Source: Octopus sinensis
Taxonomy: Eukaryota
Reading direction: 5' to 3'
Assembly: GCF_006345805.1 (NCBI RefSeq)
Contig: NC_043023.1
Location: 15,438,001 to 15,502,000 of the forward strand
Length of the DNA: 64,000 nt
Below the pieces are notes generated by a model. The model saw only the letters and a list, made by a program, of their open reading frames with translations. It was not told the origin of the DNA and did no database searches. The position numbers and the translations under genes are program-made. Positions 4,489-14,921 of the stretch are shown here, one piece after another (the first letter of the stretch is position 1; each line of letters opens with the position of its first letter).

Positions 4489-4571
4489 TCGACTAAAGGC
4501 ACTGCTCCAGCATGGCCACTGTCAAATGCCTGAAACATGTAAAATAGATAGGTTTCCCTATTTTCTTCCAT

Positions 4572-5581
4572 GTATCCATATTTATTATTGAAATATCACT
4601 TCCAGTATCGAACTGAAGTTTAATATTTATTCCAATCATTTTTACGTGTACAAATTTTCTCATTTGGGAGTCGAATTTTGTTTCTGTTGAGAGCCCTCTA
4701 GGATCTTTAATGGTTGATCTTCAGAATTTAGTTCTGCAGTGTGAATTTCTGTATATTCAGTTGTTGTAAGGCCTTTTACCAAAAGAAGACACCTGAACAT
4801 CTCAGGTGTAATTCTTTGAGTTTAAAAATATTCACACATTCTGTTAATTGTTCCTGCGTATGTGATAAAATCACCATCCTCTTTTTTCATTCTATTCCAA
4901 AACACCATCCAAGTGTTAGACAAGTTTTATCACCGAATATGTTAGACAGTAATTCTATTGTTTCTTTAAAACAAATTTCATTGAGTTTTTTGGGGTAATA
5001 TGAAATTAAAGTAATGTTCATACTCAGATGGGGCTCATTTATGTCATAATAACCTTACTTTTTCTGTGTCTGACCATGTCTTACAATCTTCCTTAAAAAT
5101 TACCTGCTGTAGTACAATGCAACAGTTATACCGTCCTCTGGGTTATAACTGGATTCATCGAGTCCAAAACGGCGTCTGGCAAAAATGTACTTCCCTTATT
5201 TTTGGACTTCTTTGAATAAAGCTCCAATAATTGTTGTTGTTGCTGCCTTTGTCGTTGATTTTGCAACAGTTTTAAAGAAGCTAATTAGTCTTCCATGATT
5301 TAACAATTTTGTATCACAAAAATTTGTTAACTGACCTGCAAGAGCTTCGAAACCCTCATCGCCAGATGTTGTAACATAATTGTTCCGTACAATAAATAAG
5401 ATAACCAGAAAATTGTAACAACAATCTAATGAACTAACAAATCTTTTACGAACCAACATTCAATATTCCTTAGGAAGTAAACCAAGCGACACCTTCCAAC
5501 TTCAGTTGACTCTGAACCGCAAACTCACTCAGATCGTTACTATTTATACTTTACTCGAGCCAGTCTACTCTCATCACAACA
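4572..5581 (-). mobile_element. Ty3/Gypsy relic: 5' LTR (5367-5581), PBS, degenerate gag, protease
   Basis: Reverse-complement copy of 13547-14555. Protease reads KLQFDTGSDISII. Confidence 0.8.
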
Positions 5582-6531
5582 GGTGCCATTCTAACCAGAT
5601 GCCCATCATAAATCCCTGCTTGGTGTCTGGTAAGAACAAGACCATGAAAACCTGCTCTACAGAATGATTTATCAAAAAATAAGTATGATGATAATCACTT
5701 GCATGGGTTGAGCGGGGATGTGCTTGAACCATAGGTAAAGTGGGGCATTAGGCTCTTGAAAAATATTTCCCACTCTACACCCAAAACTGTGACAAACAGC
5801 AATAAGCCTCCAGCTAGTGCCAGAATATGTGGGCAGTAGCACAAAGGGTGCAGATCCTGGGATCCCTGAGTGTGTCCAGCAGAGGATAACTGATCACGGC
5901 TGGGAACTGGAGTGTAATACATTTGTGTCAAAATAATATATCCTCAAGGAAACAGAGCAAATTAATATAATCAATATTGTTTGAATAAAAAACACAAATC
6001 GTAATTAGTGAGTTGATGCAAATGAGGAAAATGTGAAAAATGAATTTATTTTGTAAAAAGTAATACATTTGCTGTATTTTATTCAGCAGGACATCTGTTT
6101 TATCATTAATATTGTTATTGATCAATATGAATAAGTATATGTTTAGTTAAGGTAGATTATTGAGAGAATGATTTAGCACAGATTACACAGTCATAAGAAT
6201 CTTCTCCTGTATGAATATGTTTGTGTTTAGTTTATTATTTCTCTCTATGAAAGAATGACTTGTCACAGATGTCACAGTGATATGATTTCTCTCCTGTATG
6301 AATGTATTTGTGATGAGTTCAATATTGTTCCACAGAGAATGATTTACCTCAGGTATCACAGCAATAGAGTTTCTCTCCTGTATGAATACGTTTATAAGTA
6401 TATACAGCATATTCACAATAGAATGATTTGCTGCAGACATCACAGTCACATAGTTTCTCTCCAGTATGAGCAGACTTGTAATTAATTAAATATTTTCTTA
6501 AACGGAATAATTTACTGCAGATACCACAGTG

Positions 6532-7740
6532 CTATGGTTTGTCCCCTGTATTAATGCATTTGTGTCTATTTAAGTACCTCTTCTGAGAGAATGATTTACC
6601 ACAGATATAGCACCGATATTGTTTCTCACCTGTATGAACTGATTTGTGAGAATCAAGGTAACTTTTTTGAGAGAATGACATTCCGCAGACATCACATTGA
6701 TGAGGTTTCTCTCCTGTATGAATATATTTATGAGAATCAAGGTTACTTTTTGAGAGAATGATTTTCCACAAATATCACACTGATATGGTTTCTCACCTGT
6801 ATGAATGTATTTATGAGAATCAAGGCTACTTTTTTGAGAGAATGACATTCCACAGACATCACATTGATGAGGTTTCTCTCCTGTATGAATGTATTTGTGA
6901 GTGGTAAGGCTACTTTTCTGAGAGAATGATTTACCTCAAATATCACACTGATTTGGTTTCTCTCCAGTATGAACAGATTTGTGATAAGTAAGACTACTCT
7001 TATGAGAGAATGATTTTCCACAAATATCACATCGATATGGTTTCTCTCCTGTATGAGTGGATTTGTGAGAAGAAAGGTGACTTTTTCGAGAGAATGATTT
7101 ACCACAGATATCACGGTGATAAGGTTTCTCCCCTGTATGAATGTATTTGAGAAGTCAGGTGAATTTTTCGAGAGAATGATTTTCCACAGATATCACAGTG
7201 ATAAGGTTTCTCTCCTGTATGAGTGGATATGTGTCTAGTAAGGTTGCTTTTATCAGAGAATGATTTACCACAAATATCACAGTGATAAGGTTTCTCTCCT
7301 GTATGAATGGATTTCTGAGAAGAAAGGTGACTTTTTCGAGAGAATGATTTTCCACAGATATCACAGTGATAAGGTTTCTCTCCTGTATGACTGGATATGT
7401 GTCTAGTAAGGTTATTTTTATCAGAGAATGATTTACCACAAATATCACAGTGATAAGGTTTCTCTCCTGTATGAATGTATTTGTGAGAAGTAAGGTGACT
7501 TTTTTGGGAGAATGACTTTCCACAGACATCACAGTGATATGGTTTCTCCCCTGTATGAATGGATATGTGAGAAGTAAGGCTGTGCTTCTGGGAGAATGAT
7601 TTACCACAGTGATATGGCTTCCTACCAGCATGAATGAATTTGTGAACAGTGAGATTTCGCTTATTAGAAAATGTCTTTTTACACATATCACATTGGTGTG
7701 ATAATTTTTCTTTTTCTTTTGTCATCTCTTGAGGATTCAT
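6532..7740 (-). pseudogene. Chimeric C2H2 ZNF (B-type head, A-type tail), ~14 fingers, two frameshifts
   Basis: Starts MNPQEMTK and ends [18 protein letters not shown]. There is a 2-nt deletion near 7150, a 1-nt loss in an A-run near 6750, and a 9-nt deletion removing a Cys in finger 2. Confidence 0.85.
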
Positions 7741-12596: not shown

Positions 12597-13546
12597 CACT
12601 GTAGTATCTGCAGTAAATTATTCCGTTTAAGAAAATATTTAATTAATTACAAGTCTGCTCATACTGGAGAGAAACTATGTGACTGTGATGTCTGCAGCAA
12701 ATCATTCTCTCAGGAATATGCTGTATATACTTATAAACGTATTCATACAGGAGAGAAACTCTATTGGTGTGATATCTGCGGTAAATCATTCTCTGTGGAA
12801 CAATATTGAACTCATCACAAATACATTCATACAGGAGAGAAATCATATCACTGTGACATCTGGGACAAGTCATTCTTTCATAGAGAGAAATAATAAACTA
12901 AACACAAACATATTCATACAGGAGAAGATTCTTATGACTGTGTAATCTGTGCTAAATCATTCTCTCAATAATCTACCTTAACTAAATATATACTTATTCA
13001 TATTGATCAATAACAATATCAATGATAAAACAGATGTCCTGCTGAATAAAATACAGCAAATGTATTACTTTTTACAAAATAAATTTATTTTTCACATTTT
13101 CCTCATTTGCATCAACTCACTAATTACGATTTGTGTTTTTTATTCAAACAATATTGATTATATTAATTTGCTCTGTTTTCTTGAGGATATATTATTTTGA
13201 CACAAATGTATTACACTCCAGTTCCCAGCCATGATCAGTTATCCTCTGCTGGACACACTCAGGGATCCCAGGATCTGCACCCTTTGTGCTACTGCCCACA
13301 TATTCTGGCACTAGCTGGAGGCTTATTGCTGTTTGTTACAGTTTTGGGTGTAGAGAGGGAAATATTTTTCAAGAGCCTAATGCCCCACTCTACCTATGGT
13401 TCAAGCACATCCCCGCTCAACCCATGCAAGTGATTATCATCATACTTATTTTTTGCTAAATCCTTCTGTAGAACAGGTTTTCATGGTCTTGTTCTTACCA
13501 GACACCAAGCAGGGATTTATGATGGGCATCTGGTTAGAATGGCACC
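12597..13546 (+). other. A-type 3' UTR: decayed finger repeats followed by a conserved AT-rich segment with AATAAA (~13045)
   Basis: Repeated at 5582-6531, 37059-37990, 51798-52748 and 55536-56485; a diverged homologue lies at ~62100-62480. Confidence 0.7.
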
Positions 13547-14555
13547 TGTTGTGATGAGAGTAGACTGGTCCGAGTAAAGTATAAATAGTAACAATCTGAG
13601 TGGGTTTGCGGTTCAGAGTCAAGTGAAGTTGGAAGGTGTCGCTTGGTTTACTTCCTAAGGAATATTGAATGTTGGTTCGTAAAAGATTTGTTAGTTCATT
13701 AGATTGTTGTTACAATTTTCTGGTTATCTTATTTATTGTACGGAACAATTATGTTACAACATCTGGCGATGAGGGTTTCGAAGCTCTTGCAGGTCAGTTA
13801 ACAAATTTTTGTGATACAAAATTGTTAAATCATGGAAGACTAATTAGCTTCTTTAAAACTGTTGCAAAATCAACAACAAAGGCAGCAACAACAACAATTA
13901 TTGGGGCTTTATTCAAAGAAGTCCAAAAATGAGGGAAGTACATTTTTGCCAGACGCCGTTTTGGACTCGATGAATCCAGTTATAACCCAGAGGACGGTAT
14001 AACTGTTGCATTGTACTACAGCAGGTAATTTTTAAGGAAGATTGTAAGACATGGTCAGACACTGAAAAAGTAAGGTTATTATGACATAAATGAGCCCCAT
14101 CTGAGTATGAACATTATTTTAATTTCACATTACCCAAAAAAACTCAATGAAATTTGTTTTAAAGAAACAATAGAATTACTGTCTAACATATTCGGTGATA
14201 AAACTTCTCTAACACTTGGATGGTGTTTTGGAATATAATGAAAAAAGAGGATGGTGATTTTATCACATACGCAGGAACAATTAACAGAAAGTGTGAATAT
14301 TTTTAAACTCAAAGAATTTACACCTGAGATGTTCAGGTGTCTTCTTTTGGTAAAAGGCCTTACAACAACTGAATATACAGAAATTCACACTGCAGAACTA
14401 AATTCTGAAGATCAACCATTAAAGATCCTAGAGGGCTCTCAACAGAAACAAAATTCGACTCCCAAATGTGGAAATTTGTACACGTAAAAATGATTGGAAT
14501 ACATATTAAACTTCAGTTCGATACTGGATGTGATATTTCAATAATAAAAATGGAT
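13547..14555 (+). mobile_element. Ty3/Gypsy LTR retrotransposon relic: LTR 13547-13761, PBS, gag, aspartic protease
   Basis: LTR TGTTGTGA...TTACAACA with TATAAATA, followed by the PBS TGGCGATGAG. Broken frames read SSYNPEDGIT...IFKEDCKTWSDTEKVRLL...ICFKETIELLSNIFGDKTSL...DFITYAGTIN...FKLKEFTPEMFRCLLLVKGL (K02A2.6-like gag), then KLQFDTGCDISII (protease DTG). Confidence 0.85.
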
Positions 14556-14556
14556 A

Positions 14557-14921
14557 CATGTTTCAGGCATTTGACAATGGCCATGCTGGAGCAGTGCCTT
14601 TAGTCGAGCAAATAAACCCAGGACTTGTTCTTTGTAAGCCTAGTACTTATTCTATTTTTCTCTTTTGCCAAACTGCTATGTGACGGGGGTGTAAACACAC
14701 CAGCATCGGTTGTCAAGCAATGTTTGGGGGATAAACATATACACACACACACATTATACGATGGGCTTCTTTCAGTTTCCGTCTACCAAATCCACTTACA
14801 AGGCTTTGGTCGGCCCGAGGCTATAGTAGAAGACACTTGTCCAAAGTGCTACACAGCGAGACTGAACCTGGGACCATGTGGTTGGTAAGCAAGCTACTTA
14901 CCACACAGCCACTCCTACGCC
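14557..14921 (-). mobile_element. tRNA-head SINE, family S2
   Basis: Minus strand starts ggcgtaggagTGGCTGTGTGGtaag...GGTTCAGTC (A/B boxes) and contains an (AC/AT)n tract. Copies at 27343, 35403, 50762, 57925 and 58320. Confidence 0.8.

Follow-up and report, generated by a model that had tools for sequence, protein, structure and literature searches.

In KRAB-ZNF clusters, zinc-finger (ZNF)-coding sequence is subject to recombination, duplication and "shifting" between close paralogues (PMC5363842), and across animals generally, ZNF genes turn over rapidly (PMC10547256). In the FiNZ-ZNF genes of cyprinid fish, a separate exon lying 5' of the fingers' exon encodes the 28-amino-acid FiNZ domain (PMC10547256). 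Cephalopods possess large octopus- and squid-specific expansions of C2H2 genes, described in a paper in which gene conversion and recombination have 0 occurrences (PMC12513265). Here we analyzed a 64-kb stretch of Octopus sinensis DNA (the window; G+C ~35%) that contains a cluster of tandem C2H2 genes. We found that one of them, gene A, is a true chimera with the head of one gene type (type 2) and the tail of another (type 1), and that the boundary between head and tail lies in the middle of a finger, in a conserved backbone block.

The locus resembles KRAB-ZNF clusters and PRDM9 arrays in its tandem 84-bp units with a conserved backbone, in finger gain and loss, array shifting and pseudogenes within the cluster, and in the fresh internal finger amplifications of genes B and F. 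It differs from KRAB-ZNF clusters in its cephalopod lineage and in the finger exon, where no KRAB domain was seen (the Pfam search for KRAB covered the finger-exon open reading frame [ORF] of gene B), and from both KRAB-ZNF and PRDM9 in that the exchange extends past the array into a 2-kb noncoding tail and the partners are inverted. A 72-amino-acid query made of the family-specific N terminus and the first finger returned few protein matches. The best named ones were zinc-finger proteins of Octopus vulgaris and O. sinensis with 50-74% identity, as in the cephalopod C2H2 expansions; octopus, rather than fish, is thus the source of the nearest named relatives. Inverted segmental duplications and palindromes, such as those of sex chromosomes, undergo arm-to-arm gene conversion. 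The locus is similar to them in having two ~2.2-kb arms at 98% identity with a 5.8-kb spacer, but the spacer is asymmetrical, and by substitutions the arms are no closer than non-neighbouring tail copies. DNA repair may join homologous invasion with end joining or proceed by microhomology-mediated template switching. As in repair of these kinds, one junction at the locus lies in 13 identical bases within ~80% similar fingers and the other is abrupt and nonhomologous, whereas the mechanism here is deduced solely from the end product.

A finger-unit profile over the window identified 200 finger units of 84 bp in ten arrays. The fingers are of the tandem C2H2 (Krueppel-type) form, with the spacing C-x2-C-x12-H-x3-H, TGEKP-type linkers and an 84-bp period, and the product of gene B matched Pfam zf-C2H2 (E = 4e-87) and zf-H2C2_2 (E = 2e-175). 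Gene types were defined by self-comparison of the window after masking of the arrays. Genes B, C and D and fragment E are type 1 and have in common a 5' flank and a ~2-kb tail, T1. Type 2 consists of gene F, the 18.4-kb gene (-) and the 23.7-kb gene (+), which have a 5' flank and a tail, T2, of their own; T1 and T2 are unrelated 3' tails. The 29.6-kb gene (+), counted with type 2, carries a T2 tail, yet its 5' flank is only ~78-83% like either flank type. Genes A, B and F correspond to the 7740, 10452 and 43991 genes of an earlier note on this DNA; C, D and E are type-1 paralogues.

Gene A was compared with F and B in a three-way alignment. The results showed that 64 consecutive informative sites, from 6994 to 6679, were F-type and that 34 of the 35 informative sites below the switch, from 6665 to 6532, were B-type (Fisher P = 9e-26 for the A/F/B triplet). 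The interval between them consists of the 13 bases TCATTCTCTCAAA, which encode the conserved SFSQ(K) finger backbone. The 17-mer TCATTCTCTCAAAAAAG, found at 6662-6678 and 12450-12466, occurs 14 times in the window, always within fingers. Between 6678 and 6532, A was identical to B at 145 of 147 positions, the next best place in the window reaching 121. The mid-finger switch that the earlier note placed at ~6678 in the 7740 gene is thus confirmed, and the fingers at 6532-6678 match the tail of the 10452 gene, so that the result which the note said would refute it was not obtained.

Synteny supports the chimerism of A, as judged from the aligned flanks. The 5' flank of A is type 2, diverging by 3.3-4.1% from those of F and the 18.4-kb and 23.7-kb genes and by ~22% from type-1 flanks. 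Across three collinear blocks (Table 1), the region between A and B follows that between F and C, which makes A the positional counterpart of F, a gene with a T2 tail, and B that of C. Because the A|B pair copies the F|C pair in inverted orientation, A would be expected to carry a T2 tail, yet its tail is of the type of B. The cluster is one of recently amplified tandem C2H2 genes in which a head-to-head pair of a type-2 and a type-1 gene was duplicated, and A is the type-2 partner in one such pair. The reciprocal structure, a type-1 head with a T2 tail, was present in no gene of the window. We also considered a palindromic duplication of the whole of gene B followed by replacement of the head and rejected it, as the spacer is only ~77% similar, which is the old similarity between the two types, and is collinear with F|C. 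The lack of palindromic symmetry in the spacer also excludes a simple inverted duplication of the entire gene B. Some of the length by which the C|F intergenic region exceeds A|B is explained by an inverted repeat inside it (40318-40962/41272-41901, 95% identity); another inverted repeat of the window lies at 59862-60397/61468-62000 (97.6%).

The 3' end of A and that of B form inverted arms. A repeat search of the window detected them at 4810-6747 and 12381-14318 (97%), and global alignment of 4489-6678 (2190 bp) with 12450-14606 (2157 bp) gave 2113 matches and 43 mismatches (98.0%; 2113 of 2156 identical) with just two indels, one of 1 bp and the other a 33-bp deletion in B. The inverted arms of ~2.1 kb described in the earlier note were therefore recovered in full. 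The arms end at 6678/12450 and 4489/14606: identity past the distal ends was random (14/60), and directly above 6678 it was at the generic level of fingers (48/60). One boundary hence lies in homology, on the 6678 side, and the other, at 4489, is abrupt. Past 14606, B runs on into a repeat, X (to ~16085), as does its paralogue C, and the two are collinear there (14645-16017 with 35682-34281); the A tail ends ~50 bp into repeat X. Because B and C are collinear past the arm end, whereas the A arm stops at 4489, the B arm is in its ancestral context.

An insertion occupying 550-4488 and splitting the A arm from repeat X was also considered. The search for a long terminal repeat (LTR) pair or target-site duplication around 550-4488 found no LTR pair, and no X-like or T2-tail sequence occurs in 1-4488, which led us to reject the insertion. 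Just past the A-arm end is an intact 371-amino-acid gag-like ORF (3197-4312, -), whose product has one CCHC knuckle and a tail rich in glutamate and lysine. It matched no Pfam family, had no homologue among 5.8 billion proteins and no exact copy in public assemblies; downstream of it there was no pol-like ORF, and a search for LTRs found none. Fragment E, 1.7% diverged from D, starts within a finger linker, and at 51108/51115 this start directly adjoins the end of repeat X nearest the tail, in the orientation opposite to B and C. This junction is a second inverted-orientation breakpoint inside a finger array.

We investigated the relationship of the arms to the other type-1 tails. In T1, the last finger and its TAG stop are followed by five degenerate fingers and then by a retrotransposon relic. 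In A, the relic comprises a putative LTR/gag part and a protease remnant with a DTGS motif at 4493-4663, for which the Pfam matches were below threshold (Asp_protease_2, E = 0.013; Ty3 peptidase, E = 0.11); in the search for a Ty3/Gypsy relic, the gag-like stretch had no match, and an LTR pair was not seen. Degenerate post-stop fingers are present in every type-1 tail (6106-6528, 12600-13022, 37650-37987, 55539-55961 and 51801-52224), and the TAG stop sits where the linker normally has TAT (KPY to KP*), indicating that the family ancestor was truncated by a nonsense mutation before amplification. The five tail copies diverged in a star-like manner (2.0-2.8%), similarly to the duplicated flanks (1.6-4.1%). 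Divergence by substitutions only was 2.04% for A-B, 2.02% for A-D, 2.32% for A-C, 2.37% for B-C, 2.62% for B-D, 2.82% for C-D and 1.67% for D-E. The arms are thus two copies of a five-copy tail family and are not specially alike; ongoing arm-to-arm homogenization was considered and rejected, the A-B divergence being equal to that of A-D.

In a first multiple alignment the arms were nothing special, and a modest A-B-specific signal emerged when the indels and the first 100 bp were counted. A (~5568) and B (~13560) lack the sequence TTACCATGTCCCCTTG(G/T)GAGAGA, which C (~37044), D (~56500) and E (~52765) all have, so that the shared 23-bp deletion reported earlier holds at every copy. The deleted sequence is flanked by short direct repeats (GAGAG...GAGAGA), as expected for slippage. 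At ~20 sites within 6671-6580, A equals B against C and D (and E), and below 6580 nothing ties A to B except this deletion and three single-nucleotide polymorphisms (5697, 5498 and 4798). The strong A-B signal hence spans ~100 bp (6678-6580), where C, D and E have a different penultimate finger. These results support a sister relationship between the tails of A and B, head-to-head neighbours in inverted orientation. A and D have a cluster of bases in common at 6415-6419 and 6525, although E is the closest relative of D, which suggests a short exchange between the A and D tails, 49 kb apart and inverted.

We next turn to the sequence above the switch, where near-identity to F is confined to a patch of 310 bp (Table 1). 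A 6976-6679 aligned with both F 44514-44812 and F 45102-45400, because F carries an internal tandem duplication of seven fingers (588 bp; 44291-44878/44879-45466, 95-100% identity per finger), which is recent. In successive 84-bp rows A and F had 1, 0, 1 and 4 differences, three of the last four lying below 6679, and the patch itself contained two substitutions and a 1-bp deletion. It matched F at 311 of 316 positions and the next best sequence of the window at 265. Finger by finger, a10-a12 were nearest to F (82-83 of 83; 78 or fewer for anything else), and the best matches of fingers 1-9 were in various type-2 genes (72-80 of 84, 86-95%). The earlier note had the 7740 gene follow the 43991 gene, which is true of 6988-6679 and not of fingers 1-9.

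The left edge of the near-identity is at 6988/6989, with six mismatches in the 14 bp directly upstream of the patch and nine in the 53 bp directly downstream. The patch was significantly younger than the A-F 5' flank, which has diverged by 3.26% (Poisson P = 0.002). Relative to the arm rate (2.04%), 6.5 substitutions were expected and two were seen, a marginal difference (P = 0.044). Being discrete, near-identical, bounded by lower identity on both sides and less diverged than the flank, the patch looks like a separate, later ectopic gene-conversion tract. Because it is younger than the flank, and marginally than the arms, 6678 may be the end of a conversion tract, not the original fusion point; the head-tail junction proper may have been overwritten.

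The earlier note had regarded gene A as a new ZNF gene. Its ATG at 7740 is preceded by a splice-acceptor-like TATAG and its TAG stop is at 6532-6534, and the longest ORF in between was 217 amino acids. Nine bases, including the CxxC knuckle, are lost from finger 2; zinc ligands are changed in finger 5 (H to Q) and finger 8 (C to R); finger 7 contains a 2-bp deletion (~7148), finger 10 an in-frame stop (TGT to TGA, 6938-6936), and finger 12 lacks one A of an A6 run (6751-6747), which shifts the frame. A linker proline is replaced by glutamine at 6620. With its frame shifted twice and interrupted by a TGA, and with three zinc ligands lost (in a2, a5 and a8), gene A as assembled is a broken, decaying copy and not an intact gene, and the product of the rearrangement is a pseudogene. 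No working new finger combination results from it, unless the first six fingers alone are used. Two of the three A-F differences inside the patch are disabling, which fits decay of A after arrival of the patch.

Table 1. Coordinates of the genes, arms, junctions and compared segments in the window
Feature	Position	Strand	Description
Gene A	6532-7740	-	Type-2 head; 14 finger units, a1-a14
Gene B	10452-12596	+	Type 1; intact 714-amino-acid ORF
Gene C	~39700-38000	-	Type 1
Gene D	~53650-55500	+	Type 1
Fragment E	51115-52891	+	Type 1
Gene F	43991	+	Type 2
A arm	4489-6678	-	Penultimate-finger helix, last finger and stop, five degenerate fingers, retrotransposon relic
B arm	12450-14606	+	Inverted counterpart of the A arm
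Distal A-arm end	4488/4489		Nonhomologous, ...TAGTCGA / TACTCAC...
Switch interval	6666-6678	-	13 bases, identical in A, F and B
F-like patch	6679-6988	-	End of a9, a10-a12, knuckle of a13
F counterpart, copy 1	44502-44812	+	In copy 1 of the seven-finger duplication
F counterpart, copy 2	45090-45400	+	In copy 2 of the seven-finger duplication
23-bp deletion site	5567/5568 (B ~13560)	-	Missing in A and B alone
A|B intergenic region	7701-10499		Not palindromic; collinear and inverted with C|F intergenic 39656-44030
A|B block 1	7701-8560		F|C 44030-43165; 3.3% divergence
A|B block 2	8548-9636		F|C 42670-41602; 2.2% divergence
A|B block 3	9635-10499		F|C 40505-39656; 2.4% divergence

We give about an even chance to the history in which A is a mosaic, decaying member of the cluster that acquired a B-derived 3' end and, later, a conversion tract from an A-F interaction. 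In this history, duplication would have produced the A|B pair, and the 23-bp deletion would then have arisen in the B tail. About 2% divergence ago, roughly during cluster duplication, a 3' end that was broken or still being synthesized within A's penultimate finger would have paired with a finger of the inverted partner B, the conserved finger backbone supplying the homology. Nonreciprocal copying would have brought ~2.19 kb of the B 3' end (helix, last finger, stop, dead fingers and relic) into A, and a nonhomologous, illegitimate join at 4489 would have sealed the copy, so that the B tail would have replaced the T2 tail of A and created the inverted arms. In a later step (~0.6% divergence), ectopic conversion involving A and F, which are inverted and 37 kb from each other, would have left a 310-bp tract that abuts the tail and now defines the visible switch at 6678-6666. 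The 33-bp deletion in B, small exchanges among tails and the decay of A would be other later events. The earlier note had concluded that inverted neighbours exchange C-terminal fingers. Its core stands, in that A is a chimera with a tail sister to that of its neighbour, whereas "exchange" and "strand switch" go beyond the window, which contains no reciprocal product.

Several points weigh against this history. By substitutions alone, the tail of A is as close to that of D as to that of B. Seven sites, five of which are at 6415-6419 and 6525, unite A and D to the exclusion of B, C and E, so the tails are reticulate, and the proposed B-lineage origin rests on few characters. The difference in age between patch and arms is marginally significant. 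The window is 64 kb of a probably much larger cluster, and the true donors may lie outside it. The sequence fits double-strand-break repair and a replicative template switch alike, and the polarity of donation, B to A or A to B, does not appear to be readable from the window.

That two near-identical tracts abut exactly at the common 13-base block, that one junction is homologous and the other illegitimate, and that both donors are inverted relative to A would all be explained by a single event resembling microhomology-mediated break-induced replication or fork stalling and template switching (MMBIR/FoSTeS), in which F-type fingers were copied, the strand was switched at TCATTCTCTCAAA into the penultimate finger of B, and copying continued for 2.2 kb to end at 4489. 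We consider such an event unlikely, given that the patch has fewer substitutions than the arm divergence predicts (2 in 310 bp against 6.5, P = 0.044) and a sharp upstream boundary of its own (6988/6989), and that fingers 1-9 of A are not F-like. Polarity could also have been the reverse: the penultimate finger of A would be native, the orthologue of F finger 10, A would have gained a type-1 tail earlier near 6610-6580, and A would have overwritten the 3' end of B up to 12450, making finger 23 of B, and not a13 of A, the chimeric one. The penultimate finger of B is indeed atypical for type 1, being unlike that of C, D and E; leaving B aside, 6678-6580 is most similar to type-2 fingers (85-88%), the type-1 copies are alike only below ~6608-6580, and A retains the 33 bp missing from B. 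This polarity nevertheless needs an additional, older event to give A its type-1 tail, and the 83% identity of the a13 helix to F finger 10 is the background between any two fingers. The probability of reversed polarity is low.

A strong form of the single-step account, namely one fold-back template switch at the 13-base SFSQK block onto the opposite strand of the head-to-head partner, with 2.2 kb copied, as a regular reshuffling route in cephalopod clusters, is distinctly unlikely. If true, strand switching between divergent paralogues would regularly reshuffle C-terminal fingers in cephalopod zinc-finger clusters, and the inverted junction at 51108/51115 would be another instance. We regard it as very unlikely that a type-1 and a type-2 gene lying tail to tail in inverted orientation underwent a reciprocal crossover, which inverted the segment between them and swapped their tails, A obtaining its tail from a lost or off-window type-1 gene close to B. 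Gene B and the 18.4-kb gene form a tail-to-tail pair of this kind, as do C and the 29.6-kb gene, and the junction falls in the penultimate finger of both gene types; however, the product with a type-1 head and a T2 tail is absent from the window, the A tail stops ~50 bp into repeat X at 4489 without running on to a T2 tail, and the next gene leftward has a type-1 5' flank in the wrong orientation. An assembly artefact, from a fold-back chimeric read or collapsed paralogues, is hardly credible: fold-back artefacts give identical arms, whereas these differ at 43 sites and by two indels, and the A arm retains 33 bp missing from B. Nothing specific speaks for an artefact, although the 1-bp homopolymer loss at 6751-6747 could be a sequencing error.

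The other genes of the cluster show further features. ORFs of 408-714 amino acids are kept in B, C, D, F and the 18.4-kb and 29.6-kb genes, and a splice-acceptor-like site directly before the ATG implies putative upstream exons. Tail-to-tail type-1/type-2 pairs, noted above, are the rule. In gene B, 11592-12431 comprises six CYMS(S/T)LDSH units and then four CYTSTLDSH units, with 0-2 base differences between many of them, and these near-identical runs are a very recent tandem amplification inside the intact ORF. A homology search with full-length B returned solely generic long poly-ZNF proteins from numerous vertebrates, and no exact copy of the B protein is on record in public assemblies. Genes C and D share a deletion of 11 bp where the last finger begins (~38068 and ~55458), and their long ORFs (408 and 553 amino acids) end well upstream; among full-length type-1 genes, the terminal family fingers are in frame only in B. 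The array at the right edge (62924-63966, -) has fingers in three different frames, and downstream of it 62095-62455 is ~80% like the dead-finger part of the type-1 tail. This array is probably an older, decayed type-1 relative.

The process at work is the ordinary paralogue-to-paralogue recombination known from such clusters, and the locus is a well-resolved new example of it from a cephalopod, a clean, base-pair-resolved case of tandem zinc-finger gene reshuffling. It documents paralogue exchange in a cephalopod lineage, whose expansions one recent paper describes with no mention of recombination or gene conversion (PMC12513265). As the product is a pseudogene, the locus illustrates the raw process and not functional innovation. 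With breakpoints in the invariant finger backbone, whole recognition helices move between paralogues, and the exchange reaches inverted partners 6 kb and 37 kb away.

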